Assembly (NCBI GenBank): GCA_028023455.1
Contig: JAQFVV010000003.1
Span: 19,220,001 to 19,284,000 of the forward strand
Direction of reading: 5' to 3'
Length of the DNA stretch: 64,000 nucleotides
From: Epiperipatus broadwayi
Lineage: Eukaryota; Animalia; Onychophora
The notes under the pieces are model-generated. The model searched no databases. It saw nothing but the letters and a program-made list of their open reading frames with translations, and was not told the DNA's origin. Made by a program: the position numbers and the translations under genes. The first letter of the stretch is position 1, and each line of letters opens with the position of its first letter. Positions 8,246-62,539 of the stretch are shown here, piece by piece.

Positions 8246-8379
8246 ATCCTAATTTATTTTAAAATAACATTAGAATAACTTGAAAACAATCCATCAAACT
8301 CTAAACTGTTGAAATTAAGGCACACTGGCAATTCATAGAACAGGTAGTTGGGAGAATAACACTAGAACATTTTTAAAAC

Positions 8380-9081: not shown

Positions 9082-9082
9082 T

Positions 9083-9091
9083 TGGCGCAGT
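9083..9091 (+). promoter_or_regulatory. Primer-binding site TGGCGCAGT (probably tRNA-Ser)
   Basis: Lies immediately 3' of the 5' LTR and is complementary to a tRNA 3' end ...ACTGCGCCA. The Ser assignment is inference. Confidence 0.7.
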
Positions 9092-9286
9092 TACAGTTGA
9101 TTACGAACCACAATGGTGTAATTCTCAGTAATAACAATCAACGCATTGACAGCCTAATACGTTGGTGTCTAATTATTTGATTTCGTAAGGAGATAAAACT
9201 ACTAAGAAAAATATTTTTATATTTTGTTAAATTGACTAAGTTATCGTAATATTTTTATATTTTTGTTAAATTGACTAAATATCGTA

Positions 9287-10051
9287 ATGCAGCTGGCAAT
9301 ATCCGAATTTGACATCAGAGAGGCGAGTGAGTGGCCCCTGTACGTCCAACAAATTGAAAAACTGTTAATTATTAACAGAGTAAAAGACGATAAAAGCAAA
9401 ACAGCGACCTTATTGTGTTTCGACTATTTTAATCCTCGCGAGTCTAGACACATTGCCAGACTCCACTTTAGAAATCGCCGCCAAGGCAAGAATGAGCGGA
9501 CACAAGATTATGATACTGCCCTGCGGGAACTCGCAAAAAACTGCGTCTACGATTCATACCTGGAGGAAGCCCTGCTCGAACAATTTTTATGTAGAATGAG
9601 CAGTGACAGTCTGAGACAGCAATTATTGGCAGATACGGATATTAACTATAAAGTAGCTATCAAACGTGGTATAGCTCACGAACTTGTGTTGCAGCAATCC
9701 AAGGAATTTGTGGCCATGAAAATAGTGGACAACGATCCTTATGAAGTCCACAAAGTAGACAAACCAGGTAGAAGGGTGCCTGATCAAAGTGGAACAACAG
9801 ACATTAAGAAAAGTCAAATTAAGTGCTTTTGCTGCGGAAAACTAGGTCACATGGCACGTGACTGTTTTTATAAAGACCAACGCTGTAAACACGCAATAAA
9901 TTTGGTCACTGGGAAAAAATGTGTAGAAATAAAAAATTCAATAATTATACAAAGAATAACAGCCAAGAGAGCATTACGAGAAAACATAAACAAGAGGAAT
10001 TTTCAGCAATTAATAATGTGTCTTCGGACCAATCACATAAATTTGAAATAA
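9287..10051 (+). pseudogene. Gypsy gag with CCHC zinc knuckles
   Basis: W..Y..IE..L..N.V N-terminus and CFCCGKLGHMARDC knuckle. A second knuckle is broken by a 1-nt deletion near 9890, and there is an apparent in-frame deletion after ATLLCF. Confidence 0.85.
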
Positions 10052-12860: not shown

Positions 12861-13037
12861 ATAACAAACGCCGCAGCCATTTCCGTGAAAAGATGACGCT
12901 CCAGACGCGGAATTGGACATCCCCCAACGTTCTAAGAGGGAAAGTAAAATTCCCTCCCACCTCAGTGATTACATGCTAAGTTCAGAAAAAAAAAAAATCA
13001 ACAAACTAAAATGCTATCTCTGAACTTGGGGGAGGTG

Positions 13038-13731
13038 TGCTAAATATGTGTGTATATGCGTGTATATACAAAATACGTTTAACTAGAAATAAAAATAAAT
13101 GTAAAACTGATTGCTAATATTGTATTGTAAATAATTAAATGATATATTAATGCTAAACTAAAAGTAATTTATCAAGAAGGATTAGATAATGTAAACAAAG
13201 CCATTGCTTAAAAGAGACAATGCTAAAGGCGTGTCATTATCTAATCAGGTATCGTATAGGAACTAGAGAGATGACCATCACGTGGACAGCGGATGGCCAA
13301 TGAAAGGAGGCTACTCCAAATCAAGGTGTGACAAGTAATGGATCTAATATTGAATTGAGAGAGGACACTTGCTAAATGAAGCTCTTGAAAGGTAGATGTG
13401 CCATTTCCTCGGGTGCTCCAGTCAGCTCCTTTGCTTCACCTAGCCTTGCGGAGAGGTTTACCTCCAGACATGCCAAAGTAAACCTAGGGAACTATAACAG
13501 GTCGTATCGATCTCTTTATTATTTTACTCTGCCCTCGGGCCCCTTATTATATAATAATAGCATGTGTATATTAGTCATACTTTGTATATATTAATAGTGA
13601 TTAACTCATATATAATCCTGTAAATAAATCTTCGTTTTAAACCTACCTGCTGGGCTGCCTCATTAATTATTTTATATTTTGTTATTGATAGTTGCAATCC
13701 AGCAAGCAATAGAGTGCTGCTGGACACTGAA
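13038..13731 (+). repeat. 3' LTR, preceded by polypurine tract GGGGGAGG (13028-13035)
   Basis: Direct repeat of 8380-9081, with the PPT just upstream. Confidence 0.95.
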
Positions 13732-14284
13732 AAAACAATTGGTAATAAACTAACATTAATAAAAAAATGACATGATAATTCAAATTTATACATTCTTATC
13801 AAAAATATAATTGCATATCTCAAAAATTATTAACCATTTGATTTTCATTCATTAATTTGATTTTTGCTTTTTTAAAATTACTTTTCAAAAAGTAAGAATT
13901 GAAAAACAACATGTACTCAGGAAAAAGTGCATTTTAAATGAGCTTAATCCTTTGTAATTTTGGAGAGCAATAAATGAATAAGAAAAAAGGCAAATTTAAT
14001 AAAAAATTAAGTTACTTTAAAAAAAAAAAAACATTTTGAAAGGAAATCATGAATAAAATGTTTTATCAGAAAATGCTTTATTAAATTTATTCCTATAAAT
14101 TTTTTTTTTTATTTCTACACAATAGTATAATGTGCACATAAAGGAAAAAAACCTACCATTGTTTTAATTTTTTGGGAGTCCTTTGCATTTATAATTTTCA
14201 GTGTTTTCATGTAGGTTTTATTCTCAAAGGCTTCTCACTTCCAGGTTAATGCATACAGTTCTTTCTACTTGGCAATAGAAGATT

Positions 14285-14850
14285 TCAAGTTGCTTTATTT
14301 ATTTATCATTTGCTCACAGTAATAATTTATGGAGTTCTTGCTTCCTGAGCTAGAAACAGTTAGTTATATGGAATAAGGGTTTATGTTTAGGGTTATGGAC
14401 ATACAGGTGGTGACGATTCTGGTTGGCACAAAAGGAATGTCTTTTAAAGTCCATGCACTATATTTTTATTTATTATTTAAAAATTTAGTTTATAGCTGCA
14501 GTACATTACTGGTACTAAGTGGCCAAGGCATTGATGATCAGCATGTTTCTGTATTCCAACATTATTTTTTTAATTGTTATACTCTTATGGATTAACACCT
14601 GAGTATTTGCATTTAGATAATTATTGTTTGTATTCCTGCTCTAAGTTTTGCAGTGGCTAAATAATTAGCCTGGTCTACAGTGGACCACTTTCAAATCCAG
14701 TTATAAGATTGTTGATTTATATTTTTATTGTATCTCTCATGCTCATTCCTTTTATATTTAATTTATATTGTTTATTTGGGGATGATAATTGTTTCCCATC
14801 TCATAATTCAGCCCTAATGTAATTTATCTGTTACAAATTGTTGTCCAACT
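14285..14850 (-). repeat. Dispersed ~600-bp repeat, copy B
   Basis: Colinear with 20635-21250 (gagttcttgcttc.tgagctaga, ctggttggcacaaaagg, gatcagcatgtttctgtat). Confidence 0.75.
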
Positions 14851-15500
14851 TGTACCACTATTTTCTATTCAGTTATAATTGCCAATCCAACTGCGGGATA
14901 GATGATAATCATGTTCTGGCGGTCAGTTACTACATAAATTGAATCTCAGAAATGCACCAGAAAAAGAATTCTGTGTTTTGATGCAGGATTAATTTAAAAT
15001 ATTACTGTGAAATGTGACAAGAGTGTAGAGAATGATTGTTATAATTTGATTACAAATTATGAAATAAAACTATTAATGGTTATTTAAGGAGTTCACATTT
15101 AAAGTTGAGCAAGAAATCAAAGCATGATTTGGGAGATTCAATTGAGTTTTTGATTGTTGAAACTTCTTTAGATATACTTTCACTTTTGATGATGGGTGGA
15201 GTTTAATTGTTGACTTGAGGATGCAATGTTTTCACACAAGTCCTTGGAGTATTCTATCTCAGGCATTGCTCCAACTCACTTTTTTCATATTTACAATTAT
15301 TGATTATGGTTCAGTTTTAACATAGTCCTGCCTTGATCCCCAGCTTCTAAGTCTCCAAGAAAAAGAACAATGCATAATTCTGTATTTTCCACCCCCTAAA
15401 ATGCAAAGGAATAGAGCTTTGCAAATATTTTTTTGCATTATTTTTGAGTCATAGTAGCTGATAGTGTCTAAATTAAGGTAGACATTTGAGTGTTCATGAT

Positions 15501-15533
<33 letters not shown>

Positions 15534-15699
15534 GGCTGCAGAAAGGAGTTTGCTATTAACTGAAAGGAAACCCTTTGATTCCTCTTGGAGGCCTTAAAGG
15601 AACCGAGCAGGGCAAATTCCTAATGTCCACTCCATACGTTCTTGTCGTTGCAGCTGTTATTACCATATGTTTATTCATATAGTATACGAACATGGATGG
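15534..15699 (+). ncRNA. HDV-like (CPEB3-type) self-cleaving ribozyme at the RTE 5' end
   Basis: P1 GGCTGCA 15534-40 / TGCAGCT 15649-55 with a G1.U wobble; P3 ACG/CGT; L3 TTCTTGT; GT after P1; P4 hairpin 15658-86; J4/2 CGAA with candidate catalytic C15687; P2 (CCAC)TCCAT / ATGGA(TGG); J1/2 stem AGGAGTTTGC/GCAAATTCCT. Confidence 0.85.
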
Positions 15700-15825
15700 G
15701 CTGCTCACCAACATGCATTAGCCAGCGTGGTGAGTTTATTGGCTTTTTACCTCTGAGTTTAAGATCAAGAAACACCATGGTCTTTCTTCTCAGTGCCTGA
15801 TAAGGCAGAATGAATGTTTGTGTAA

Positions 15826-18799
15826 ATGATAAAGATTTTTCCCAATTATACAATTATGACAGACAAAAATAAAGCATGGCCCTTAATCCCAGGAGGCTGT
15901 AAAGTCACCAACCAAGGCAGCGGTTGGTGGCTGAAGGCGGAGGGTGCTAAGAATATCCTGGAGGTGGACCCAGGCTGCCATTTGATGATGACTTTTTATT
16001 TAGGTACTTACAACTGCAGATCACTTTCAAGTGAAGGAAGATTGCAAGAATTAGAAGAAGAACTCTCTTATATTAAATGGGATATTATTGGACTTTGTGA
16101 AGTTAGAAGAAAAGGTGAAGAGACAATTGATTTAAAAAGTGGACATATGCTCTATTATAAAGGCACAAATATTGGAAATACAAGTGGAGTAGGATTCATT
16201 ATAAATAAAAAGTGGAAGAACAATATTGTGGAGATTGATGGTGTATCAGACAGAGTGGCAAGATTAGTTATACAACTTAATAGCAGATATCAAATGCAGA
16301 TAATTCAGGTTTATGCCCCAACAAGTTCTCACAGTGATGAAGTAGTAGAAGATTTTTATATGGATGTACAAAAGGCTTTTGATCAGAGTAAACAACATTT
16401 TAAAATTGTTATGGGAGATTTTAATGCTAGAATTGGTAAACAAATGAAAGATGAAAGTGTTGTAGGTAATTTTGGTTATGGTAATAGAAATGAGAGAGGA
16501 CATAGACTTGTGGAGTTTGCAGAGAAGGAAAAACTTTATATTATGAATTCTTTTTTTGAGAAAAATGTTAGAAGGAAATGGAAGCATCCAAATGAAGGTA
16601 CAGCAGAATTGGATTATATTTTGACTAACAGGAAATACATATTTCAAGATTGTAATGTTCTTAATAAATTTAACACAGGAAGTGATCATCGATTAGTAAG
16701 GGGTAAGATACATGTTAATGTAAAACTAGAGAGACAAAAATTATTAAGAAAAACTATATTTACAGTTGATATTCCTAATCTTCAGAAACATTCTAATGAA
16801 TTTAAATTAGAACTTACAAATCGGTTTCAAGTATTAGTAGATTTTGAACATGATTCAGATTTGAATGAAATTAATATGAAAATAACTGATACACTTTTAA
16901 AAACTGCAACAAAGATAGCTGGTAGAAAAAAGCAGCAATTGACTAATAAAATTTCTACTGAGACTAGAGAACTTATGAAGAAAAGAAGGAATATGAAGAT
17001 ATGCAAGAATGATGCATTAAAAAGAATTGAATATCTCGAATTTTGTAAAATGGTGCGGAAAAGAGTTGAAAATGATATAAGAAAGTATAACTGTGAACTA
17101 GCAAGAAAAGCTGTAGAAGAAAATAAAAGTCTTAAGAATGTAAAACAACATTTTGGTATTGGTAGGAAATTTATATCTGCAATAAGGAAAAAAGATGGAA
17201 TTATTACTAAAAAGAGGGATGACATTATGAAATTGGTAGAAGATTTTTATCAAGAATTATATAGTAATAAAGAACAAGTACCTCCTATATCTATTACAGC
17301 TTCTGAATTGCCCAGAATTTTAAATGAAGAAGTGAGAAATGCAATTAAATGTATGAAAAAAGGAAAGGCTCCAGGTAATGATGGAATTATAATTGATATA
17401 TTAAAAGAAGCAGGTGAAGAAACAGAAAAAATATTAGCAAAGTTATATACCAAATGTCTAAATGATAAAGATGTACCGGATGATTGGAAGAATGCAGTAA
17501 TAATATTAATATTTAAAAAAGGTAATAAAGAAGATATTAGAAATTACAGACCTATCAGCCTTTTATCAGTTTTATATAAAATTTTTACCAAGATAATTAC
17601 AACTCGTCTACAGAGAACCTTGGATTTTCACCAACCAAGAGAACAAGCTGGATTTAAAAGTGGTTTTAGTACAGTAGATCATATTCAAGTATTGAGAGAA
17701 GTTATAGAAAGGACAAATGAATATGAGTTGTCATTATGTTTTGGATTTGTAGATTATGAAAAGGCATTTGATTCTATAAATATTTCTTCAGTGATTAAAG
17801 CATTGGATCATCAAGGTATAGATCCAGGATATTGTCATATTTTAAAGAATATTTATAAAAATGCAACAGCAACAATTAGATTACATAATGATACTGGGAA
17901 AGTCAACATTGAGAAAGGTGTAAGACAAGGTGACTCCATATCTCCAAAACTTTTTACAGCAGTGCTGCAAGAAGTATTTTGTGGATTAAAATGGGAAACT
18001 AAAGGAGTGAAAGTAAATGGAGATTATTTAAGTCATTTAGATTTCGCAGATGATGTAGTTGTTTTTGCAAATAATGCTTCCGAGCTGCAGGAAATGTTGC
18101 AGGAGTTATCAGATGAAAGTAGGACTAAAGATAAATGTTAAAAAGACTAAAGTAATGTTTAATCGATTTGCTCCAAATATGAAAATAAAGATTGATTATG
18201 ATGAATTAGAAGAAGTTAAGAGTTACAAATACCTTGGTCAGATTATTAATACAGATGGAAACATAATAGAGGAAATTAATCATAGAATTAAACTTGGTTG
18301 GAGTGCTTTTGGTAGAAATAACTTGATATTAAAAGGAAATATGCCTATGTGTTTGAAAAGAAAGGTTTTTAACAAATGTGTTTTACCAGTTCTTACTTAT
18401 GGATCTGAGACTTGGACACTTAATAGAAGATCAATACAGAGACTTCAGACCACTCAAAGAAGTATGGAGAGATGTATGTTGGGAGTAACAAGAAGAGATC
18501 GAAAACGCAATGTATGGGTAAGAGAACAAACAGGTGTTACTGACCTCATTGAAAAAATTAAAAGATTGAAGTGGAGTTGGGCTGGACATATTGCTAGAAG
18601 AGATGATAATAGATGGATAATTGAAATTTTAAACTGGATTCCAAGAGATTGTAAAAGACCCAGAAGGAGACCACATGTAAGATGGATGGATGAAATAAGA
18701 AAATGTGTAGGGGTGATGTGGAGAAGAGAAGCTAAAGATCGGAGAAGATGGATTAAACTTGGAGAGACCTTCATCCTGCAGTGGATTGATAATGGTTGA
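15826..18799 (+). pseudogene. RTE APE-endonuclease/reverse-transcriptase polyprotein, one frameshift at about 18116-18123
   Basis: The 771-aa ORF (TYNCR, GLCEVR, GDFN, SDH, RT up to DFADD) joins the 246-aa ORF (KVGLKIN, YKYLG, WAGHI, W..EI) if one 8-nt repeat unit is restored. Confidence 0.92.
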
Positions 18800-25346: not shown

Positions 25347-25531
25347 GATTATAATATAAACAAAATTAAAAATAATAATAATATAGTTATTAATAATATG
25401 TTCACTGAAAGTATAAGAAAATGAACTTGCAATATTGTATTTTTTAAATAAAATATCTAACTTTCGCCACAATTAAATATCTAAACATCACATGATCACC
25501 ATTCTTTATGCATGCGTACACAAACTGTTTA

Positions 25532-26058
25532 CACAGAGGCTAAACCCTTCATACAGTAGTGCCACTCAATGCAAGTCAGAGTAATCAATGGATGCAAGAT
25601 GGTTTGTGCATAAAATCTCTATCTAGTGCCTATTCATTCAATATCCCCAGACTAGGTTAGTGGTTTAATACCAATCCTGCCCATTAGGATTATGGAGTCT
25701 CTGGTTATTAAAGAACCAATTACACCAACATGTATGGGTGCTGAACTGAGTTCAGATCTATACTATATAAACTGATGAGCTTGAATGGAAAACATGTTTT
25801 CATTTTTGACTCAAAGCTTTATAATTAGCTAATAAGGTAGAAGCTGGCTGCTGGAGGGTTGCATTAGATCCCAAGATTTAGGTGCAATGCTCTCAGATCC
25901 AAGGATCCTTACTAATGAAAGCCACAAGCTAGAAACTAGTCTGGGAATATTGGATGAGTAGGCACTAGATGGGGATTTATGCCTAAACCTTCTTGCATCT
26001 ATTGATGACTCTAGCTTGCACTGAGTGGCACTACTGTACGGAGAGTTTAGCCTCTGTG
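25532..26058. mobile_element. MITE with ~130-bp TIRs (CACAGAGG...CCTCTGTG)
   Basis: Long inverted arms, flanked by TA on both sides; same family as 60386-60657, with partial copies near 22355-22400 and 37990-38125. Confidence 0.8.
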
Positions 26059-28436
26059 TAATTAAATATCTACTGGGTAATATTCTTTTTTTTTGCAATA
26101 ACCTTTTTCTCTTGTAGAAATGTTATGATCTCTAATCATTTTAAAGTTTTTAAGTCAGTACTAACTTTGTCTTAAATTTTGTAAAATTTTTACATTATGC
26201 ATTTTATTATGTGAAATACTACATATTTGAAAAGAATAATAAAAAAAGAATAAAACATGTATGCTTTCAACTTAAAGAAATTTTATTAACTTTCATTAGA
26301 AATCAGTACAATGTTACATTATTGCATTATCTATCTCATTCTGTTCACGTATTTTGATGTTTGAATTGAAATTATTTAACAATATACAATGTAATCTTGT
26401 TTTTTATTTTCAGCACATGAAAATAATATTTAGCTATGGTTTATGAAATTTTATGTAAATGGCAGTTATGAGAAATTTGATTTTCCCTGGACTCTATCTA
26501 GCATCCCTTTACATTTCTCTCTCTACTTTGAAAGAGATAGTTATTATCTAATTTTTATCACTATTTTTTTTATTCATCATAATTAATAAATTATGTAATA
26601 TTTATAATTTTTTTAAAAAGTATTTCAATAAAAATAAGTTTCTATTTACTAATGCAGATTTTTAAGAATTTGTGATTTTTTTCACCCGGTCATTTCCTAT
26701 TTTATAATAAATTCTTTAATCTCACAAATGATTAGTTTTACAATATATATATATAATTTATAATTCCGTATTTCAATAAATAATAAATAAATAAAAACCA
26801 TCTTTTTATAGTGTAGATTTTGAAAAAAAAAAAAATCTTTTCTATTGTAGATAGCTTATCAGAAAATTCAAATATTTAGCTCTTATATTTATCATACTTT
26901 TTATATATTTTAGAAACTGTAATGGTAAGCTGAGAGTCTGCAGATATGGCCAACATTCATAGCCAGAGAGCACCCCTACATTTCCCATCTAGAATTTCTT
27001 AAATTAAATCGTCTTCATTGGGTATAAAATGTTAATATTTATCTAGGAAGATTATAATTTACTGGTGAGGCCATCTAACTATATATCTATATAAAGCCAT
27101 CAACCATTACCAGCAATTTAATTTATATCCCCTAGGTCATGAAGAACTAGAGATTCCTTGGAATATTCAGTTGACCGTAGCATATGATAAAAATGATAAC
27201 GACTGGTAAAAGAGACCCATTAAAATAAACAAATAACCAAAATTTATTATAAATTCATTAATTATATTATAAGTTACATAATAATTATTCTTAGCTATTG
27301 TATTTCATAATTAACTGATGTAATTCAACATCTATTTATATATAAGATTATCTCAATGGATCATAACTCTAAAATCTTAAGTCATGTATATACTTATATG
27401 ACATTTCTAATATCTTTCTGAACACCATCAGGATCAGATTGCAATATTAAATCAACAATATCAGTTATTTTATTTATAAATTAATTGGTTATGCTTGTTA
27501 AAGCTAATTCGTTACATGCATGCATATATATACACTTTGAAATTTTAATTAAAAGGCAATACTAGCATAGACTCCAATCAAGCACCATTATTCTAAAATA
27601 AGTGAGTTATAAATATTATAATATAGCACAACATTCTCAGCATTAATCAAATCAACAATCATCCTTTGTGACTGGAATTAAAAAAGTATCAGGTCTTTGA
27701 TTTCTTTTTTATTGTTATTTTTAATTAATAAATTTATCTACCATTATTTTAAGTTATTCCAGTGAAATTATTTAATACTAAAATAGATTTAAGTATTATA
27801 AATATTTTCTCTTGTTCACAATCATAGTCTTGCATAACAGTGTTTACAATATATATGTGAAGATATATGTTTGTGTTTGGGCATCAGATTATTTTCTGTC
27901 AAATGATTTGGATAGTGCAATGATAAAGATCATATTTAAAGTCCATTCACTTTAAGATAATTATTATTTATTGATGGCCAGTATGCTCAAAGTACCAGTT
28001 ATTCAAGAGCATTAATGTGCAGCATATCTTGATCTCGGCATATTTTTTATGTGTATTATTGTAACTTCAGCACTTAAATATGTGCATACAAATCTTTTAT
28101 ATTATGCCTTAAGTTTGGCATTGGTAAAAAAATAATTAGCCTAGATTTTTTAAAGTATCTTTTAATTCCAGTCACAAAGGATGACTGTTGATTTGAATAA
28201 TGCTGTAATACTATGCTATATTATTATGCTTATAACTGGTTTTGAATAATGCCAGTAATACTATGCTATATTGTTATGCATATAACTTGTTTATTATTTA
28301 TTTCCAACTATGAATGCTTATTCTCTGCTCACATTCATTTCATTTATTTTGGAAAGATGTTTTACCATCACCCCACATTCGTACCATTACAATACATATA
28401 TGATTAAAAACTTTTGATTTATATAAATATTTATTT

Positions 28437-32646: not shown

Positions 32647-33658
32647 TAAACCCCCAGTGAGTTATACACAAACTAATACAAATCCATCAATAATCGAAAA
32701 AACCCTCATACTTTAGTTTGGATTGTATTTAAGCATTCAATTTATTGACATGTTACAATGCAGTGTGAATTTTGTATATTAACATGATTTCAGTATAAAT
32801 CATAAGCCATCCCAAAATCATTATAAACAATCAGAATATAAAGGCTGTGCCTCATTTTTAACAACTCTGGATATTAAATGAAACTTCAGTTAATAAACGT
32901 AAATGATTGTTTATAGTAATTTAAGAATGGGTTATGGTTATACTTATATCACATTAACATATGTTTAAATATAATCTAAGCTAAAGTATAAATGAGTCCA
33001 CTCTCTATTTTGTGCTTTTCTGAAGGTTTGTAATGATGGTGTTTTAGTTGTATTTATTGTTTGGACTATTTCTATTATATAATATGAGTATTGAATGTCT
33101 TGAAAAAAATTTAACTTTATTTAAATATTCCAAATACATTTAACTGTTACTAATAGCACATCAAACAGGTTAATATATGCACATTTCAAGAGGTATTATT
33201 CTCCCCCTGTTCTTCAGGTCTTGCTGAATTGACCAGTGACAGTACTAACATGGGAATTGAACCTAAACCCTTAGATTCTTGAATATTGAATTTTAAGGTA
33301 ATGCACTAACCAAGTGAGTCATCCTGCAGTTAATTAGAGAGTTATTTTAAATTTCAATACTCAAGAATAAAAAAATCCAGGTTCAATTTTCATGCTAGTA
33401 CTGTCACTGATCAGGTCAGCAACATCTGAAGAGGGGAGAATAATACCTCTCGAAACATTGTGCATATACTAACCTGTTTGATGTGATATTACTAATAGTT
33501 GAAGGTATTTGGAATATTTAAATAAAGTTAAATTTTTTTAAAAACATTCAACACTCATATTAGATGATGGAAATAGTCCAAATAATAAATATAACACTCT
33601 CTACTTTATTTATTGATGAGTTTGTATTAGTTTATATATATCTCACTGGGGGTTTATA
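32647..33658. mobile_element. Head-to-head inverted pair of tRNA-headed SINE-like elements
   Basis: Minus copy 33327 to 32647 has A-box-like TGACTCACTTGG and B-box GGTTCAATTCC (33263-33253). Plus copy about 33345-33658 lacks about 350 bp internally. Both end CTCACTGGGGGTTTA. Confidence 0.7.
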
Positions 33659-38227: not shown

Positions 38228-38992
38228 TTAACCCTCTTCAACTGCCATTAAATTAAAAAAACAGAATGCAAGCAACGTCATCAAGTCAAATCCCTCGATT
38301 CTCAAATTTTAATGTTAGTGGTTTGTCTATTAATTGCATTCATTTTATTTTTATTTATGAAAATTGCCTCTTTAATTTTTCTTTTAAAAAGAAATATAAT
38401 GATTTAAAAGAGTTGAAGATTGATAATAAAAAATGGATATCTTCATATATTTCAAATGCTCAAGTGAATTTTCTTAAAGATATATATAAAGATGTGTTAA
38501 ATGTTTCATTTTGTGTTACAAATAAAGTTAATAAATTAGTGAATAATTTTAAAAGTGTCACACCTGTCAAGAAAAAAAGTAATGTTGTTTATCAGTTTTT
38601 TTGTGGATGTATGTTATCATATATAGATGAATCGAGATACAGTATAGAGAAAAGATTAATTAAAGGAGCATGAATTGTTATACAAGAGTGTAAAAAGTAA
38701 AAATAATAATGATTTAATGACTGTTTCAGTTTTCTTGGATCATGAAAGAACATGTAAATATAAATTTAAGATTGATCTTGAAAATGTTAAGATTCTTCAT
38801 GAGAGAAAAACCACAATAAAAGAAAAATTAAGGAGGCAATTTTCATAAATAGAAATAAAATGAATATAATTAATAGACAAGATGCTAATATTAAAATTTG
38901 GGAATCTTGGGATTTGAGTTGATGATGTTTGCTTTCATTATGTTTATTGAATTTAATGGCAGTTGAAGAGAGTTAACCAAAAATACTTCTGC
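38228..38992 (+). mobile_element. 5'-truncated Penelope-like element (GIY-YIG end) with an inverted 5' copy of its 3' end
   Basis: NVVYQFFCGCMLSYIDESRYSIEKR and later HERTC..KVKIL..KIKEAI..NRQDANIKI match the C-terminus of the 56661-59012 protein. Segment 38228-38383 is the reverse complement of 38820-38976. Confidence 0.85.
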
Positions 38993-50699: not shown

Positions 50700-53349
50700 A
50701 GGTAGAGAGAATCTTAAATAGATACGTAATGGATATAGAAAAGTTGTTAGATGTGAAGGAAGTAGTGATAGAAAACATGAAAGCAGTTAGTAATGGGAAT
50801 ATTAGGTTCACAAAAAATGAATTGAATGAGGCAGGGAAGATATTGAAAAGAGGAAAGGCGAGAGGTTTAGATGGATGGGCAGCAGAGATGGTAATGAATT
50901 TAGGGCATAGAGCAAAAGCAAAGTTATTATCATGTTTTAATAAGATGGCACAGAAGACAGTTTTTCCGGTTAGTTGGAGTAATACAAGAATAAGATTAAT
51001 ATTTAAATGAAAGGGTAAGGATCATAGAAAGTTAAATAATTATAGACCGATAGCGGTGACATCAGTTTTATATAAAGTTTTCTCATATATGGTAGCTGAA
51101 AGAGTTGTAAAATGGATGGAGAGAATAATGTAGTGGGGGAAATACAAGGAGGTTTTAGGTCAGATAGGCATATAGGAGATAGTTTGTTTGTAGTTACACA
51201 ACTTATGGAGATGAGTAGAAATTCAGGTAGATCATTATATATGAGTTTTATAGATATAGAGAAAGCATATGATAGAGTAAATAGAAATAGATTATGGGTA
51301 AGGTTAGCCAATTTGGGAATGGATGAAGCTTTAGTAAATATTACTAAGAAATTATATGAATATAATTATTATACTTACCAGTTAGGGGATATAGAATCAG
51401 TTAAAGTTAAAAATGGGGTGGGATTAAGGCAAGGATGCCCTATGTCACCTATTTTGTTTTTGTTGTTTTTGAGTGAAATGGAGAAAGCAATAGAAAGACT
51501 AGGAAGAGGGATAGAGATACCATTAATAGGTGGCAAGGGAGTATATATTTTGTCGGGTCTTTTTTTTTTTTGCAGATGATATCTTTTTGTGTGCAGAAAG
51601 AAGAGAAGATATGGAAATTATGTTGAGGACATGTGCAAGGGTGGGTAAAGAGATGGGGTTTAAATTTAGTGAAGAAAAATCAAATATAATGATGGTTAAT
51701 ACTGGGGAAAGAGAAGATGTAGAATTTTTATTGGGAGATATAAAGTTAAGTGTGGTGGATAGATATAGGTATTTGGGAATCATCTTATGTAATCAGGAAA
51801 AGTGTTTGGATGAATGGGAGAAAAAATTGGTAAATGAAGCAAAGAAAAGAAAGGGTCTGGTAAAGAAACTAACAGTATTTTCATATAATAAATATGATGT
51901 AGCTAGAATTGTATGGAAGGGAGTTGCAGTAGCAGGGTTAACATATGGTAATGATGCATTATGTGTTAGTAAAAGGTTTTAGATTATTTAGAGAAAGTAC
52001 AAAGGGAAGTAGGAAGACATGCATTAGATGCAGAAATGTAGACAGCAAAGGAGACAATTCAAGGAGAAATGGGATGGTCAAGATTTTATATGAGAGATGC
52101 AAAAAGTAAAATGAAAATGTTTGGTAGGTTGCAGCTTATAGATAGTAAAAGAGTAGCAAAAATAGTGTTCAATTGGGTTACGAGTAAAGGGCAGGAAACA
52201 AGATGGGTGAGAAAGGTAATGCGGTATGCAAAAGATTTGAATAAAGAATTTATATCAGTATACTTGTATAAAAGGTGGGATGATTGTGTTAGGAGGATTG
52301 TTGAGTGTTATAGTGGTAAGGAATGGGATAAAAGAATAGAAGCATTAATAAAAAATAGGGAGTTGGAGAACTAGTATGGAGGGTAAGAAGAGTTTAAATA
52401 TATATAGAAGTAAACGGAATATTGGATGCGAGTTAATTTATGATAATGGTAAGGAAAGTAGTTTATTATTTAAGGCTCGAACGGGATCTTTAGCAACAAG
52501 TGAATATACATGTAAATAGAAAACTATGGATGATTTAGTGTGCAAATTGTGTAAGGAAGGTATAGAAAATATTAGGCATCTGTTGATTGAATGTAAATGT
52601 TTGAAAGCACAAAGGGTACAGATAATGAAGTTATGGGAGAATAGACATGAACAAAGTGACTATACAGAAAGTGAGTTATTAGTTTTTATGTTGGGTTGCG
52701 AAGAGATAAGGGGGATTTAGACATAAAGGCCATAGAGTTGACAAAGATTATGTTGTGGAAATGAGATGGGGCAGAATATGGGAAGACTTAAGAGTGGGGA
52801 ATGGAAAATAAAGTGGCTAACAGGTTTATCTGGGCATAATTGCTGAGATATTCTTGACTTCGTTTAAGGAGAAGCCGTAGTACATCACATCACATACAGA
52901 TTTATCTGGGCATAATTTCTGAGATATTCTTGACTTCGTTTAAGGAGAAGCCAAAATACATCACATCACATAAATGGAAAAATATGGGTGATTTATTTTG
53001 TAAATTATGTAAGGAAGGAATAGAAAATATTAGGCATTTGTTAATTGAATGTAAATGCTTGAAAACAGAAAGGGTACATATAATGAAGTTATGGAATAAT
53101 AAATATGAAAAAAGTGATTATACAGAAAGTGAATTATTGGTTTTTATGCTGGGTTTGGGAAAAAATAAAGATTTAGATATAAAGGCTATAGAGTTGACAA
53201 AGATTATGTTGTGGAAATGGGATGGAGCAGAATATGGAAAATTTAGAGTGGGGAATGGAAAATAAAGTGGCTAACAGGTTTATCTGGGCATAATTGCTGA
53301 GATATTCTTGACTTCGTTTAAGGAGAAGCCACAATACATCACATCACAC
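50700..53349 (+). mobile_element. 5'-truncated decayed non-LTR retrotransposon (RT plus C-terminal CCHC finger; clade uncertain, RTEX/L2-like) with three stacked 3' ends
   Basis: KARGLDG, YRPIAV, QGGFR, FIDIEKAYDRV, GLRQGCPMSPILF, FADDI, YRYLG, GEMGW, CKLCKEGIENIRHLLIEC; (ACATC)n tails end at 52897, 52971 and 53349. Confidence 0.88.
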
Positions 53350-56300
53350 CGGACTGCTATAAAATTCTAAATTATATTATTGTTACTAAATTTTTTTTCC
53401 AATCTGAGTCGGGGTAGTCTTAAGGTAAGCTCTTTCTCTGTGTTTATTTAATTAAACGTTCAAATGAGCAGTAAAGATGATTTGCTGGAACAGCAAATTC
53501 TTAGATCCAAACCAATCTCAAAATCGCAGTGATTCTAACGTTAGACAAGCCTTTTCAAGCTCTCAGATAGAACAAGAGCGCTTCCAGTAATTTTAATTCA
53601 ACTAATATTGACCAAGATGATTTTATTAATTTTAAAAAACTTACCAAAGATATACAAAAACAAAAAGAATCCTAATCTGTTAGTAAACAAAAAATCGCTG
53701 TGATCGCAAACACTGGACAGAAAGCTGCTGTGATCAATCCGATCCAAATTTAAAAAAAAGTGTGGAAAAAAATAATTCTAGGAAAAATCTAAGCAAAACC
53801 TATTCTTCTGATGAAAAAATAAATGATAATACTCAAAATCAAAGTTACAATTTTAAAAAGTTTCAATCTCAAACAGAAAACACATCAAAAGTTATGCCAC
53901 GAAATTTTAAAAACATAGGCGGTGCTTTACCGGAACCTGCCGATCTTTGCTGTAATAACACTTTCTCCGGTCAAAAAAACAGAGTTAGAATCATTTCCCA
54001 AACACAACAATGGAGATTTAAATACAAAAGCACCTTCCCAACTCTATCATGATACCGAAGTAATTACACAACAATTTTCTGATCAAAACTCAGCCTCTGA
54101 AAACAACAGCGATAATGGCAAAATAATTCGCAATGTTTCACAAAGCACAAACAATCGCAAAAAACGAGTGTTGAACAAGTCCTTTACAACTCACATTTCC
54201 CCAGTCTAAACACCAAAAACACACAGGTCACCAACAAAGCAGTGGCTTCCCAATACCAAACTCAAACCAAAATAAAAAATTCTAACACTACAAATAACGA
54301 AAGTTACGCTACAGTTCTAGGTAACAACAGTCATTAAAACAAAATCTCAGTACAGATTATCAAACAAATCAATATAGCATCCTAGATTTCATTGAGGATG
54401 AAACCCCCACAATTAATTTAGAGGAAAATAACTGTCAGCAACATCATCAAAACTCACAATCTCTCTTAAAAAACTATCAAGCAGTAAGTCAGGAATTCAA
54501 CGCTAGAATTCCCCAAGTACTCTTTAATTCCTTTCTGAACTATCACAGTGAGAACACTCTAATACTCACTACCACTAACGACAACTGTAATCTTTTCACC
54601 TTTCCTACAGATGAATTATTTGAACTGCTTAAAAATCTAAACCTGGGAGAAGCAATCAAAAGAATCTACCACCATCCCAACAGGAGATACTTTATAATAG
54701 AGTTCCACAATTTAATTCAAAAAGAACTCTTCAAAAGATAGCAACTCTACCTGAACCAACGTTACCTAATTAAAATTGACATGGACCGGCCTAAAATAGC
54801 ATATGGTTTAGCACACAACCGCTATAGAAACTTCGCAAAAATGGACCTTCAAAGGCTGCTGTCCAAATATGGTGCGGTGAAGAAACCAACTTTAAATACC
54901 TCACAGAAAGAAGAGCAGACTTTGAACTACCTTCAAACAACACGGCCTTCTCACTCAAACTCCACAAGGGCTACTCTCTACTTGACATTCCATCAACACT
55001 AGAAGAAAATAAGTGCCCTATCTTTATTGCCATTCGAGGTGTTCAGCCTCAATGCTTTCACTGTGATGAACGGACACACCTTGTCCAAACTTGTTTCATG
55101 AGAATTTGTGACTTCTGCAATATCAAGAAAACTAAATACCACAAATGCAATCTAACACCTTCAAATCTACCTTCTACCCTGCAATACCACACCTCTAATG
55201 ATGTAGGGCAGAATAAAACTCAAACACATAAACCATACTGGGAAGCACCACAGTTAAAAAACAGAAATAAGTGCTGGAAATAAAACTAACACAGATGAAG
55301 CAATCACCTCCTTACAGCAACTCCAATCACAATTGCCTTTTCAACTGTCACAAGAAGCTCTAAATGCAACCAAACCAAAAGACACATCTCAACAGCAAAG
55401 TATCACAAGCAAGAAAAACACAATTATAACACTGCACACAATGCAAGCCAGACAAAAAGAACAAGTAGCTACACATAAAAGAAAAACACAGGATTCATCG
55501 AGGTCCCAACATGAAGATTTAACCAATTCCACCGCTGACTTAGACATGGAACTAAATGGGCTATATCAAAACACTAACAAATTGCAAAATCAACGAAGGA
55601 AAAAGGAGACTAAAAGAACCAGATTAGCTGAATCACAAGACATGCAAGACAGTACCTTCCTGGAAGCAACACCTTCCAACTATAGTCACAATGAAGGCAC
55701 TCTCAATTCAAATCAAATCACATCATCTAAAATCCCAGTGCTCGCTAAATTACATATGATAGAAAAAGCCATGCAAAAAGATACTCAGCAAGCTTCCAAT
55801 TGTGATGAACAATTAGTCTTAATGGATGAACTCGTTACTGGAAAATAGTTGTATACTTAGTCCAAGTCCGGCAAAAACCCTACTATGTAAAAATAGGTGG
55901 CATTAATGTAAGGGGCCTTAATTCCCTTGAACGCATTTACGCTGTTAAAAGATGGATTGATAAAATCAATATCCACATAGCATGCCTTTCTGAAACAAAT
56001 CTACACACTCAATCAGACTACAGAATAGACCAGCTATTCCAACAATACAGGCTCTTTCAATACATGCATTCCAACACTGCATCATCTGGGGGCACCTTTC
56101 TCATTCACAAAAGCCTGCCATATACCAAACTCAGGACACTTCACCTAGACAAAGAAGTACTGCTGCTAAATTTAACCTTCAGAAGATATTCACTCAATAT
56201 AATCTATTTGTACTTAAGGAACACTGCTGACTCAGTGCATGCAGCAATCAACAAAATCAATTCCATTCTGTCATCTAACACTTTACCAACAATCTGCTTT

Positions 56301-56446
56301 GGTGACTTCAATACAAGTTACCACAACTTCAACACTAAGTATTTACACCTCTTCAACAGAGTCTTATTGTGTGGAGAAGGCTTTTTCCTCCTGGTGCCCC
56401 TCCTTCTATACACTGCAAAAAGATCTCTAATAGATCTGCTCTACTA
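53350..56446 (+). mobile_element. 5' half of an L1/Tx1-like LINE (decayed ORF1 plus truncated APE of ORF2)
   Basis: C/A-rich strand; ORF1 pieces with LSKYGAV and knuckle CFHCDERTHLVQTC (about 55050-55095). The ORF2 frame gives INVRGLNS, ACLSET, GDFN, SLIDL. No RT or 3' half is present downstream. Confidence 0.8.
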
Positions 56447-56660
56447 TTCTATTAAATTGGTATATATTTGTTTAAAATATTGTTACTGTATTAATTATTG
56501 TATTGTTTTGAATAATTATATATATTTTATTATAATTGGAATACAGACATTGATTAATAATTTACATATAATACGGTTATGTATTGAGTTACTTTTACTT
56601 TGGAATATAATACGGTTATTTATTGATTTACGTTTAATTTGGAATATTAAAATTTTTAAT

Positions 56661-59012
56661 ATGGATAATCAAATTTGGATTTTACAAGAATGGAAGCGAG
56701 TGTCAATGAGAATAATACGTCTAAAAGGTAGATTGCAATTTTTATATAATTGTAAAATGAGTCATATTTTCCCAAACTGTTGCAACGTTAAAATAAATAA
56801 GGAATGTAATTTGCAAGATACTAAAATACAAGATATTAAAATGATTATTTTACGGAATATAATTTGTCAATGCAAATGTTTTTTGTTTAATCAGCGTAAA
56901 TATTTAAAGTGTTTAAATTATTTTATTAATCTTCATGATGTTGATGAATGGTTTAATTATAAAAGTCGATGTCAATATTATTTGAATAACTACTATATAA
57001 AAATTTATAAAAAATTTAATCGTAAAATTACGTTTCTATATAATAAAAATGTAAATAGGAGAAAAAATAGTAACTATGTCAATTTATCTAACATGGATAT
57101 TGATTTTCAACAAGAATATATTTTGAATTATGGTTCTAAATACGTTGGTGGTATGTGGGTGGATAGTAATTTAGAGTTAAAAGCTGCTGTTGAACATTCT
57201 TTTAGTGTAATTAAATGTTCTCCTGAAATATCAAAGGAATTAATACAAAAAGTGAATGTTAAGAAATTTAAAAATAGAACTAATTGCAATTCGCATATAT
57301 TTAGATTTAAAAACTTTATTCATGATAACGATCTTGTTTGTTTAAAAGAAGATAAGGGGTTAAGGTTATGTCTTATGTCAAAACTTGATTACTACGATAA
57401 AGTTTTAATTCAAATGGAAAAGCTTAAATTTAAACAAGTTGGAAAAATAAACATTGAAAATTTACGTGTAAAGTTTATTGATGATATTTTAAAAAAAGCT
57501 AAAAAGAATAAATATATAGATGCTCATACGTATTATCGTCTTTATCCATCTGCTGCAATTTGTCCTAGAATTTTTTCGAATATTAAACTACATAAACAAG
57601 ATAAACCTTTAAGATTAATGATTGACTTTGGCGGATCATTTTACTATGAAACTTGTAGATTTATAGAAACATTATTAAAAGATGTTCTTGGATTTGGAAA
57701 ATATACTATTAATTCATCGTTTGATTTTGTAAAGAAAATTCAAAATATTAATATTAATAATAATGATAGTATTTGTACATTTGATATATGTGAGATGTAC
57801 GGTTCAATAGATAGATTAAAATCTATAAAAATTATATTAGATGCTTTAATGTTAAAAAAAGTTGATGTTAAAAAAGTAAAATTTGTAAATGATGTATTAT
57901 ATTTTATTGATAAAAATATATATGCTATATTTAATGAAAATTATTATAAAATGGATTACGGATGGCCTATGGGACTTCCTGTAGTTTCACAAATATGTAG
58001 TTTTGTGGTATCAAGATATGAAGATATAATTCTTAATACTAATATATATTGCCAAGGTATTAAAATTTATTACAGGTATGTTGATGATGTTTTCGTTTGT
58101 GGAAGTTTAGATATTATAAATGTATTATTCAATGAATTAAATAGTTTAGAAGGTTTAAAATGGAGTAAATCTTTTGAAGAAAAAAAGTCAATTCAGTATT
58201 TAGATATTAAAGTTACACGTAATAAAAATAAATTAGATTATTGTATGGTAATAAAAGATATTGAAAAAAGAGGATATATTCCTTTGTATTCAAATGTGCC
58301 AATAGCACATAAATTATCCGGTTTAAAATCATTTTTATTTAGGAATAATAAATTATGTAAATATAGTTCTGATAAAATAAGTAACATAAATGTATTTATT
58401 ATGGATTTGTTAAATGTTGGATATGATCATAAATTAATTTATAATATTGTTACTAAGTTTAATAATAATAGAAATATTTTAGATGCTATAGATATTGATA
58501 AAATAAAATATACTTGGATATCAATACCATTTATTTGTAATGAACAGGTTAAATTTATAAAACAGATATATAAAAATATATGTCGAGTTGCATTTTATAC
58601 TACTCCTAATTTAAATAGATTAATAAATAATTCAAAAAATAGGTGTAGTATTTTAAATCAAAGTTGTGCAATATATAAATGGCTATGTGTTTGTGGAAAG
58701 GCATATATTGGGGAATCTCAATGTACATTGGAGAAAAGATCAAGGGAGCATTTGTTATTATATAAACGAGTGCAAAAATCAAGACAAGAGAATGTTAGAA
58801 ATGATGATGTATCACCATCAGTATTTTTTGATCATAATGTAACATGTAATTATGGTTTTGATTTTGATTTTAATAAAGTTAAAATTCTGTGTATTGAAAG
58901 AAATAATAATAAACGCAAAATTAAAGAAGCTATGTTAATAAAAAGTGAAAAGCAACAGTTGATAAATAGACAGGCAGCCAATATAAAAATTAATGAATTG
59001 TGGGAAAATTGA
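56661..59012 (+). CDS. Penelope-like RT/GIY-YIG endonuclease protein (783 aa from the presumed native ATG)
   Basis: IKLHKQDKPLRL, TFDI, GWPMG, YYRYVDDVF, QYLDI and C-terminal AIYKWLCVCGKAYIGES..REH..H..KVKIL..KRKIKEA. Confidence 0.9.
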   Translation: MDNQIWILQEWKRVSMRIIRLKGRLQFLYNCKMSHIFPNCCNVKINKECNLQDTKIQDIKMIILRNIICQCKCFLFNQRKYLKCLNYFINLHDVDEWFNYKSRCQYYLNNYYIKIYKKFNRKITFLYNKNVNRRKNSNYVNLSNMDIDFQQEYILNYGSKYVGGMWVDSNLELKAAVEHSFSVIKCSPEISKELIQKVNVKKFKNRTNCNSHIFRFKNFIHDNDLVCLKEDKGLRLCLMSKLDYYDKVLIQMEKLKFKQVGKINIENLRVKFIDDILKKAKKNKYIDAHTYYRLYPSAAICPRIFSNIKLHKQDKPLRLMIDFGGSFYYETCRFIETLLKDVLGFGKYTINSSFDFVKKIQNININNNDSICTFDICEMYGSIDRLKSIKIILDALMLKKVDVKKVKFVNDVLYFIDKNIYAIFNENYYKMDYGWPMGLPVVSQICSFVVSRYEDIILNTNIYCQGIKIYYRYVDDVFVCGSLDIINVLFNELNSLEGLKWSKSFEEKKSIQYLDIKVTRNKNKLDYCMVIKDIEKRGYIPLYSNVPIAHKLSGLKSFLFRNNKLCKYSSDKISNINVFIMDLLNVGYDHKLIYNIVTKFNNNRNILDAIDIDKIKYTWISIPFICNEQVKFIKQIYKNICRVAFYTTPNLNRLINNSKNRCSILNQSCAIYKWLCVCGKAYIGESQCTLEKRSREHLLLYKRVQKSRQENVRNDDVSPSVFFDHNVTCNYGFDFDFNKVKILCIERNNNKRKIKEAMLIKSEKQQLINRQAANIKINELWEN

Positions 59013-59071
59013 TGTATGACGTATTACTTTTGTTTACATTTGTAACGGTTTTTTCTAATACAATTTGAGTC

Positions 59072-59111
59072 TAGTTGACAACGACTACATAGATAGTTGA
59101 AAGTACTTCTA
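59072..59111 (+). ncRNA. Variant type-I hammerhead ribozyme in the PLE pseudo-LTR
   Basis: Stem I TAG/CTA; core TTGACAA (U3, A8) plus one extra C; stem II GACTA/TAGTT; GAAA; palindromic stem III AGTACT; predicted cut 59108/59109. Confidence 0.7.
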
Positions 59112-59948
59112 TTAAATTGGTATATATTTGTTTAAAATATTGTTACTGTATTAATTATTGTATTGTTTTGAATAATTATATATATTTTATTATAATTGGA
59201 ATACAGACATTGATTAATAATTTATATATATATAAAACTTTTTAACTTTTTAAATTTGCTTTCATCTCTCTAACTTTTATTAATAATAATATTTTTCTAT
59301 CCCACCCTTTATTACTATATTAATTAACAATCTCTATAACATATTCATCCCATTTTTTTATATGATAAATCAACATAAAAACTTTGTCTGATTCTTTAAG
59401 CATATTCTATTACCTATCTAATCCATCTTATTGCTGGTTTTTTACTTAGGGTCTAATCAACAATTAATTTATATCATGAAATTAGTCTACTTTTAATTTT
59501 TTCCAAATAATTGAATTATTATTCATTTGAGATTAAAATTTACCATTAATTGTCATGAAGATGGAAAAGAAAGTAATTAAAGGGCTGATTTATTGTTTAT
59601 TTGTTTTGTTTTTTTCAAAGATTGTTTTGAAATTCAAATAAATATTTATTTTAAATGTATTTGCTATTTCAAATGTCTAATTTGCAATTCTCACTAAAAT
59701 TCTTAAAATACTGAACATCATATCTGTTTTATTTATGAAATTTTTATTTGTAACAAATATGCCATGGTAAAAGATAATCAAATTGTTACCATTAATAATC
59801 ACACATAGTTTTATTAAAGTTAAGTTTTTAATACATAAATAAAGTGTTACTCTGCCAAATATTTAAGCATTTTGCCAATGAGACATTTTCATGAACACAC
59901 ACATACCTCTTAAAGCTACTTATTATTACGTACTTTGTTGGCTAGCTG

Positions 59949-60289: not shown

Positions 60290-60385
60290 CTTTTATTACA
60301 AAAAATAAATTAAAAAAATACAGATTAGTAAAAGCAATTAATAAATATTGCTATTAATATCCATAGTGTAATATTAATAATTTTT

Positions 60386-60657
60386 CACAGAGGCAAAATT
60401 CTCCATACAGTAGCACTACTCAGTGCAAGCCAGAGTAATCAATGGATGCAGGAAGGTTTGTGCATAATATCCCTATCTAGTGCCTACTCGTCCAATATCC
60501 CCAGACTAATTTCTAGTTTGTGGCTTTCATCAGTGAAGAGCCTTGGATCTGAGATCACTGCACTAGATAGGGATTTTATGCACAAACCTTCCTGCATTTA
60601 TTGATTACTCTGGTTTGCACTGAATGGCGCTTCTATATGGAGAGTTTTACCTCTGCG
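60386..60657. mobile_element. Short near-palindromic MITE of the CACAGAGG family, in the last Hr78 intron
   Basis: Arms of about 100 bp are reverse complements of each other and match the 25532-26058 TIRs. Confidence 0.85.
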
Positions 60658-62539
60658 AAAAACAGTGTGTGTAAGCATAAAGAATGGTGATCAAGTGATG
60701 TTTGAATATTAATAATTATAATATTAATGTAATAGATGTAAAATAATGACAATAATATGTCTAAATTCAAACTCAAAAAAAAAAAATGAAGCTTTCAATA
60801 AACAAAGATGCTTCACCTATTCTTCAATCTAAAAATTTGTCTATCATGAATTCTTTGTTATATAAAATATTTTAATAGTTAGAACTTAGTTTGTTTTTTT
60901 TAAAAAAAAAGATATTTAAAACAATTTAATCATTTTTCTGTGCTTTTTATATTTATTGTTTATATTAAAAATTTTCTTTCTTTTCTGATTTTGAAAATGT
61001 GTATATAGTAGTTTTCTTGCATTTGCAAAATCATCATTTGCAGTTTGAAAATTAAATTCATACATATGAACTCATACATTTCACATGGGCCACCTGCATG
61101 AACAAGATCATTAATCATCTCTATGTCAATCTTTTTTTTTTTATTATCTTGGGCACTCAATTTAGTGATGTTGCTTTTTCCCCCTCTCTTGATTCATTAC
61201 GTTACTGTTTCTGGGACAAAAATTCCTAGGAATTTTTTTTTTTTCCTTGTTTCAAATTCTGGGAAAATTTTACACGACCCATTTCTTTTTCAAAACTAAA
61301 TAGGCAAATATAAACCAATAATATGGGGTAATGATGTTTTTTTTATTATTTAACCAGTATTTCTTTCAAATGTGATATACAACACTCTCACATAATTTTA
61401 ATCTATTCAGTCAGAGCAGCAACATAACATAGATTTCATATTAGTACATTTACCTTTTATGAATTTACAACTGATCATATTCAAAGAATACAAATCTATT
61501 TTAGGATAATATAGACAAGTTTTCTTCAAATAAGAGTATTACATAATTAGGGTAAATTCATTAACAGAAAAACATTAAATAACCACAAATCTTTTAATAA
61601 TATCAGAAAGCTAAAAAAATCCTTTTCAATGTCAAAAATTTTTTGCTACCGAAATACGAAATAAATTGACAGATAAAGCAATAAATGTTTTAAAACATGA
61701 GTCAAAATTAAATTTTTTATATACTAATGTGTACTTTTTTTTATATAATAAATAAATCGTTTTTCATATTACACCTATATGTATTAGTATTTTGAAATTC
61801 ATTCCTTATCCTGGTTTCTTCTGATAAGTTGGTTTTATTTCAATTTAAAAGATACTCTTTATTTTAATCTTTATCTAATTCAAAATTTATTACTTTCTAA
61901 TTGTAATTCAGCACCTATGATGATCATTGAATACTGATGTCTGGATGGAACATATGTAGTCTTATTTACTGGTATTACATAGATAGTACATTTCACTTTT
62001 TCTCTGAAATCCTAAGAATTGCTGATAATTTTGAGGAACAAAAAAAAAAAAAAAAGATAAGTTGCATCTTTTTATCTGATAACAAATTCACACTAATTGT
62101 AAAAAAAATAATTTGAAGGGGATTGGTGTTCAAATACAATACGTTATTAAATACAATCATTTGTAAATTTCTAAAAGAAAAATGCACTGATTTTCAATCT
62201 GTTACATTGTTTCTATGACCGAATAGATTAAAAATATATAATAGTGTTCTATACCGTATATAAAATAAACACCGAATAAAATAAAAAACATCATACTGTT
62301 TTATTATTTATTTGATATTTAGTTTTGAAAAAGTACTAATAGTGTTTAAAAAAAGTACTAAGTCCTTGATTGAAAACATTTCTATCAAAAGCAGTGCACA
62401 TAAATTTAATCCATGATTAATTCATTACATTTTCATCTATAATAATAACCTAATTAAAGTATTTGTAGTTGATTACTTTTTCTACTACTTCATTGCTATC
62501 AGTCTTTATTTTTTATATTTTCTGAAAAATCATTAAACA

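Follow-up and report, generated by a model that had tools for sequence, protein, structure and literature searches.

The Penelope-like element and its surroundings

The window, i.e. the whole 64-kb stretch of DNA that was analysed, contains at 56447-59230 a copy of a Penelope-like element (PLE), which is 2784 nt long and corresponds to 1.05 units. The features of this copy and of its immediate flanks are the following:

56064-56446 (+): fragment of a LINE apurinic-type endonuclease in the 5' flank, broken at the PLE junction (weak Pfam match to Exo_endo_phos_2)
56447-56570 (+): 5' terminal repeat (pseudo-LTR) of 124 nt, equal to the stretch that follows the predicted ribozyme cut and devoid of the catalytic part of the ribozyme
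56566-56643 (+): two tandem 39-nt units in the 5' UTR (direct repeat, 90% identical)
56661-59012 (+): intact ORF of 783 codons for a Penelope-type reverse transcriptase with a C-terminal GIY-YIG endonuclease (ORF list, phmmer and alignment)
59107-59230 (+): 3' terminal repeat, the "tail" from the predicted cut to the 3' end of the family (direct-repeat analysis)
59231-59240 (+): TA-rich target DNA at the 3' junction (sequence, and TA-rich loose ends of other copies)

The two terminal repeats, 56447-56570 and 59107-59230, exhibit 99% identity over 124 nt and are spaced by 2660 nt. The 39-nt units begin where the terminal repeat stops, which is also the point at which the family has its 3' end. 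Their position makes them possible candidates for an element that initiates reverse transcription or binds the reverse transcriptase.

With regard to the encoded protein, an exhaustive phmmer search returned 5313 relatives, the best of which is 27% identical. The exact 783-residue protein has no record in the databases searched, and a search with its C-terminal 160 residues was also blank. Pfam gave no match in the window protein; its relatives carry RVT_1 and a weak GIY-YIG match (relative P0003). In an alignment with six relatives, the motifs DKG, K.HK..RP, PMG and RYVDD are invariant. The C-terminal endonuclease columns of this alignment read Y..C.C...Y.G...R..(EH)...E...R..KE, and the window sequence IYKWLCVCGKAYIGES...R..EH...E...KRKIKE aligns with the domain of the relatives. 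The structural marks of PLEs are also present, namely a partial tandem arrangement with pseudo-LTRs, 5'-truncated copies and an AT-rich target. On these sequence features, the element is assigned to the endonuclease-bearing PLEs, as a divergent lineage.

Membership of the Hydra clade was considered and rejected. PLEs of this clade exhibit DKT in place of DKG, and their N-terminal GxKF/Y motif is not conserved (Craig et al. 2021), whereas the window protein retains DKG (within EDKGLRL) and comprises GSKYV. The likeness to the Hydra clade lies in the element size of less than 3 kb and in the TA-rich target.

On the 5' side, the frame of the PLE ORF is free of stop codons through 56447-56660, upstream of the ATG at 56661, and continues into the LINE fragment as an in-frame fusion, resulting in an ORF of 982 codons from 56064. 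The flanking LINE (53700-56446, +) is represented by its 5' part, comprising an ORF1-like ORF (55333-55848) and half of the endonuclease domain, and ends exactly at the PLE 5' junction. No reverse-transcriptase ORF that would be the remainder of this LINE was found downstream of the PLE, and no second copy of the flanking LINE was found in the window. The junction may stem from template switching at the 5' end of the PLE RNA, with a chimeric cDNA as the result, or from a deletion at insertion.

Several other features were observed in the window. A broken LINE reverse-transcriptase region in several ORF pieces lies at 50729-53265 (+), and its C-terminal cysteine-rich segment is duplicated (52526-52720 and 52930-53265). 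An inverted-repeat element at 60381-60662, with 103-nt arms that are 88% complementary and 76 nt apart, looks like a MITE-type foldback repeat, and related copies are located at about 25.5-26.1 kb (25471-26061). A sub-threshold Rfam match to MIR5380 at 33236-33407 (-), with 51.8 bits against a gathering score of 150 and E=1.3e-7, is probably a repeat and not a microRNA gene.

A hammerhead motif downstream of the ORF

The 3' UTR of the PLE contains a motif at 59072-59111 (+) that reads TAG TTGACAA C GACTA CATAGA TAGTT GAAA GTAC T T / CTA, where the slash marks the predicted hammerhead cut, between 59108 and 59109. The portion that precedes the cut (59072-59108) is located 60-96 nt past the stop codon. 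Its parts were assigned as follows:

59061-59074 (+): 5' strand of helix I, with a distal part (59061-59068), a 3-nt bulge (59069-59071) and the proximal TAG (59072-59074) (ViennaRNA MFE folds and descriptor)
59075-59082 (+): core box UUGACAA (U3 U4 G5 A6 C7 A8 A9) and an unpaired C between A9 and G10.1 (sequence, descriptor and comparison with relatives)
59083-59098 (+): helix II, GACUA/UAGUU, 5 bp with G.U as its first pair, and a 6-nt loop CAUAGA (descriptor, folding and table of relatives)
59099-59108 (+): G12 A13 A14, A15.1-GUAC-U16.1 and U17, with the cut predicted after 59108 (sequence and descriptor)
59109-59119 (+): 3' strand of helix I, inside the 3' terminal repeat

Compared with the consensus C3 U4 G5 A6 N7 G8 A9, the 5' core box keeps U4, G5, A6 and A9 and exhibits U in place of C3 and A in place of G8. 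The strict 5' consensus is thus unmatched, and the 3-8 Watson-Crick pair is retained as U-A. The 3' core box is present, with GAAA at 59099-59102, U16.1 at 59107 and U17 at 59108, a residue H17 other than G. The extra base between A9 and 10.1 is C59082, and the closing pair of helix II is a G.U wobble instead of the usual G10.1-C11.1. The palindrome at helix III is 8 nt long, AAGTACTT (59101-59108), and in it GUAC lies within AGUACU; this self-complementary insert can pair only between two copies of the motif. In the predicted folds, helix I comprises UAG/CUA, the 3-nt bulge and then 8 further base pairs (59061-59068 with 59112-59119). The sequence-only reading of this DNA had the sequence, the coordinates, the U3-A8 core, the extra base and a palindromic helix III too short to fold alone, all of which hold. 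It is amended in three respects: the palindrome is 8 nt long, helix I extends 8 bp past the bulge, and the first pair of helix II is G.U.

The motif was compared with chance expectation by means of a descriptor that allowed any Watson-Crick 3-8 pair in NUGANNA and at most one extra base, and that required a minimum of 4 bp in helix II and of 3 bp in helix I, GAAA, U16.1, H17 other than G and a palindromic insert whose length is 0, 2 or 4 nt. This descriptor, which was composed after the candidate was known and with terms drawn from PMC4209133, matched once on the two strands of the 64-kb window, at 59072-59111, and in none of 150 windows simulated with a first-order Markov model. A laxer version (wobble 3-8 pair, up to 2 extra bases, one helix II mismatch, 2-bp helix I) again had 59072-59111 as its sole match in the window.

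The Rfam hammerhead models, run over the window and the locus, gave no match at the gathering score or at E<=10. At E<=10 they likewise miss the canonical-core hammerheads of the relatives described below, so the absence of an Rfam match says little about the window motif. It had been proposed that standard searches would miss this motif on account of its core. Rfam does miss it; however, as relatives with a canonical core are missed as well, the cause is the minimal build and not specifically the change in the core.

With regard to folding, the monomer forms no helix III, and its stability is no better than that of shuffled sequences (z = -1.0), as is expected for a minimal hammerhead of the dimer type. 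When two copies are cofolded, an intermolecular AAGUACUU helix is predicted, at -30.0 kcal/mol against 2 x -11.7 for the monomers. The MFE fold pairs the extra C with G12, and the same pairing is possible for the extra C of two relatives, L007 and L012. Together with the G.U pair at 10.1-11.1, this possible C-G12 pairing is a modelled weak point that would weaken the core.

Four PLE relatives (L007, L011, L012 and L013), with 21-27% protein identity, have hammerheads of the same build with a canonical C3-G8 pair. They were compared in a hand-registered table; MAFFT set the columns of helix III and of the helix I 3' strand out of register. In these hammerheads, helix I has 3-4 bp, and CUGANGA is followed, at the same place as C59082, by a single extra base (C, U, C and A), then by a helix II of 5-9 bp and GAAA. 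Their helix III inserts are palindromic (UA, CG, CG and CAUG) and are followed by U, H and the helix I partner. The helices vary in sequence among the elements, and the pairing is maintained. In L007, the motif is located about 70 nt past the stop codon; a short tail and then (TA)n come after it, in a layout that matches that of the window element. A fifth relative, L006, which is cut off by the end of its contig, has CUGAUGA with an extra A, and the closing pair of its helix II is the same G.U wobble as in the window motif.

Further hammerhead-like sequences were noted in L011 and in the window. L011 contains tandem UTR repeats of about 30 nt (1-300 and 2968-3057), each with a CTGATGA half-core and without the GAAA box, and a complete hammerhead at 311-351 that overlaps the ORF start. 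In the window, a second related PLE family is represented by a 3' fragment (38398-38975, +; also delimited as 38398-38913) that is decayed and frameshifted, with 40-62% amino-acid identity over the endonuclease region. Behind its stop codon lies a remnant that reads CAG TTGAAGA GAGTTAACC AAAAA TACTT CTG, also given as CAG TTGAAGA ... AAAAATACTT CTG. AGTTGA...TACTTCT is common to this remnant and the main motif; positions 3 and 8 of the remnant are T and G, and its helix I exhibits covariation (CAG/CTG versus TAG/CTA). By its sequence, it looks homologous to the main motif. As a comparison hammerhead it was rejected, being too broken, without G12 and without helix II.

The motif could in principle be an accidental likeness in AT-rich DNA that has been forced onto a repeat boundary. 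Two core positions are off consensus, the fold stability is unremarkable and Rfam matches nothing at any threshold, as such a likeness would predict. Nevertheless, the single match in the real window contrasts with 0 of 150 simulated windows, and the same build occurs at the same place in four relatives that Rfam misses too; a U3-A8 variant has, moreover, already been published (PMC4209133). The simulated windows and the motifs of the relatives effectively refute an accidental resemblance, to which we attach a very small probability. The sequence at 59072-59111 is very probably a true hammerhead homologue. A 21-mer from the motif was also searched in metagenome, prokaryote-genome and viral collections; the five loci obtained match only over 21-22 nt and were rejected as chance matches.

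Copies of the family and the origin of the 5' end

Data on the copies of the family were obtained from Logan contigs of four public runs, mapped on 56200-59500. The single-copy 3' flank has a summed depth of about 50-75 in the DNA run. Within the element, this depth amounts to about 6,000-16,000 along the 5' third and rises to about 800,000 at most, near 58864-58974. This gradient of about 100-fold, rising from 5' to 3', is the 5'-truncation pattern of a retroelement with a very high copy number. After about 59230, the depth drops from about 4.7e5 to about 70, and 33 contigs enter unlike, TA-rich sequence past 59234. The collapse in depth and the TA-rich contig ends place the 3' end of the family at a fixed position, about 122-126 nt downstream of the predicted cut. 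Nearly all copies therefore include an uncut junction between hammerhead and tail.

In an independent run, probably of RNA, a contig covering 59070-59172 bridges the cut site with zero differences at a depth of 23, and in another small run a contig covering 58980-59133 exhibits one difference at a depth of 67.5. Among the best-supported variant letters and loose ends listed, none corresponds to 59027-59230 or to 56447, which carries no weight either way. Given the intact ORF, the 99% identity of the repeats and the multi-copy contigs, U3-A8 is probably the common form of the family and not a private decay of the window copy. Judged by its ORF and repeats, the window copy is young, intact and recently inserted. 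A contig of single-copy depth in the DNA run joins 59113 back to about 59017, which points to a tandem duplication, somewhere in the genome, of a 3' UTR segment of about 97 nt with the hammerhead; two ribozymes would there be near enough to dimerise.

The 5' end of the window copy lies close to the predicted cut. Repeat identity begins at 56447, none of the 7 preceding bases matches those before 59107, and the position equivalent to the cut in the 5' repeat is 56448/56449, so that the 5' end of the copy is 0-2 nt away from it. The earlier proposal that the predicted cut maps onto the start of the 5' repeat is thus confirmed, with identity from 56447 and the cut-equivalent position at 56449. 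The accompanying proposal of a 2660-nt cut-to-cut RNA as template is contradicted by the insertion itself, which is 2784 nt long and passes through the uncut hammerhead to the family 3' end at about 59230-59234. An insertion of this length across an uncut site indicates a template that comprised more than one unit and whose 3'-proximal site had not been cut. If truncation were random, about 0.2% of 5' ends would be expected to lie no more than 2 nt from one given site in a 2660-nt unit; as this is one selectively reported copy in a genome that seemingly contains hundreds of full-length ones, a single chance match is not very unlikely.

The reading that we favour, with moderate confidence, is that of a dimer-type type I hammerhead, with C3-G8 replaced by U3-A8, in a recently inserted PLE whose 5' end would have been left by the cut of an upstream hammerhead. 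According to this model, a transcript of more than one unit, either multi-unit or resulting from read-through, would be cut by the hammerhead of the upstream unit, which probably acts as a dimer and is probably assisted by protein, while the 3'-proximal hammerhead of the same transcript would remain uncut. On nicked TA-rich DNA, reverse transcription would start inside the next unit, near its position +122-126. The cDNA synthesis would then run back to the cut 5' end, which would result in a copy comprising the cut site, the unit, the uncut hammerhead and a 122-nt tail. Since every inserted copy needs an uncut 3'-proximal site, a weak and dimer-dependent ribozyme would suit such an element.

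The individual parts of this model differ in strength. The chances that the motif cleaves in vivo appear evenly balanced. That cleavage produced the 5' end of the window copy is slightly more doubtful than that. Thousands of copies read through the site, which implies that most templates were uncut there, and the bridging contig of the probable RNA run also speaks against cleavage. That full-length copies of the window family, and of the other hammerhead families of this genome, start as a rule at the cut site is less likely than not. The contigs of the PLE relatives contain repeat sequence upstream of their cut, which indicates that PLEs do not generally begin there.

Two other explanations of the 5' end have to be weighed against cleavage by the upstream hammerhead. 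The motif could descend from a hammerhead that no longer cuts, or never usefully did, and its retention in the 3' UTR could be due to a structural or protein-binding function; the 5' end would then reflect chance or a reverse transcriptase that dissociated from its template at the base of the duplex formed by helix III. This agrees with the uncut junction in nearly all copies of the family, with two features that would weaken the core (the 10.1-11.1 wobble and a possible pairing of the extra C with G12), and with published work, in which minimal PLE hammerheads are weakly active (PMC4209133) and hammerhead mutants of a Poseidon element insert normally, transcript ends at the cut being absent (PMC11167929). 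The 5'-end match is, in addition, a single case with a 2-nt offset. However, the 3-8 pair is still a Watson-Crick pair and not a broken one, and the remainder of the core, the palindrome and the NUH site are all intact in a young, high-copy family. A match within 2 nt has a probability of about 0.2% per copy by chance, and helices of 6-8 bp are normally read through by reverse transcriptases. On balance, we regard this explanation as rather unlikely.

The template could also have been a 2660-nt circle, cut at both ends and ligated in the manner of retrozymes, from which rolling-circle reverse transcription would proceed from an internal start. Such a model has been proposed for PLEs (PMC4209133), and it accounts for copies longer than one unit and for the terminal repeat. 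Nevertheless, an endless template gives the cDNA no reason to stop at the cut, which is precisely the feature in need of an explanation, and a circular template is accordingly considered very improbable. Cleavage by the upstream hammerhead of a longer transcript remains the reading that we prefer. If full-length copies of the window family and of the other hammerhead families did start at the cut as a rule, this would be a genomic footprint of in vivo cleavage by a minimal U3-A8 hammerhead, and the first direct sign that PLE templates are processed at the 5' end by their own ribozyme and then copied from an internal start in the next unit.

Comparison with known hammerhead systems

Minimal hammerheads in the flanking repeats of PLEs were described by Cervera & de la Peña 2014 (PMC4209133), who also reported a natural U3-A8 covariation in Cercyon of Schistosoma mansoni, with about 1,300 genomic matches (PMC4209133). 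The window motif shares with these metazoan PLE hammerheads the type I layout, a short helix I, an unpaired base between A9 and 10.1, and a helix III in which A15.1-U16.1 encloses a palindromic insert, a build that implies a dimer as the acting form. It also shares their location in an untranslated or repeat region and their presence in very many copies and, with Cercyon, the U3-A8 pair. The published minimal hammerheads of PLEs cleave poorly in vitro (PMC4209133). In contrast, the window element has a different host and a very divergent protein, with 27% identity to its best relative. Its wobble G10.1.U11.1 replaces a highly conserved G-C pair, and its helix II comprises 5 bp against 7-8. Moreover, the published motifs are present in both flanking repeats, whereas the upstream repeat of the window element starts at the cut and lacks the ribozyme.

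The sequence-only reading had attributed an unusual core to this lineage, and this does not stand, as PMC4209133 already contains U3-A8, the base between 9 and 10.1, a short palindromic helix III and a model of dimeric action. The same publication agrees with the statement that PLE hammerheads with a short palindromic stem III act as dimers, in that a dimer model is published there. That the C3-G8 pair tolerates compensatory swaps agrees with the partial restoration of cleavage in a C3G/G8C double mutant (PMC11167929). None of the non-canonical traits of the motif is new; the U3-A8 core adds a natural example of covariation at the catalytic 3-8 pair, a point already published. The sole fresh lead is the insertion that starts at the predicted cut. 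The role of hammerheads in PLEs is debated: the original proposal was the trimming of precursor RNAs, and the sole biochemical study found cleavage to be dispensable. The window family would be a good test system for this role: its young copies number thousands, one that is intact resembles a master copy, the 3' start is defined, and one insertion begins at the predicted cut.

That biochemical study concerns the Poseidon element PAc of Anolis carolinensis (Frangieh et al. 2024, PMC11167929). The single mutations C3G and G8C abolish cleavage of its hammerhead, cleavage requires the protein of the element and is dispensable for insertion in vitro, and no RNA-seq reads begin or end at the cut site (PMC11167929). 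Its reverse transcription starts internally, which accounts for the PLE "tail" (PMC11167929), and by analogy the fixed 3' end of the window copy matches this published start. PAc and the window element are both PLEs with a hammerhead near the junction of repeat and ORF, a fixed tail end and an AT-rich target, and a swapped 3-8 pair in PAc keeps partial cleavage. However, the PAc motif overlaps the start codon, whereas the window motif is located 60-96 nt after the stop codon, and PAc lacks transcript ends at the cut, whereas one window insertion begins at the predicted cut.

The non-LTR retrozymes are animal hammerhead repeats that give circular RNAs (PMC7229834; bioRxiv 10.64898/2026.07.22.740005) and are thought to be mobilised by the PLE machinery (same sources). 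They share with the window motif the dimer-type type I hammerhead and the palindromic helix III. In contrast to these short, non-coding tandem repeats, the window element is autonomous, with an intact ORF and a single complete ribozyme.
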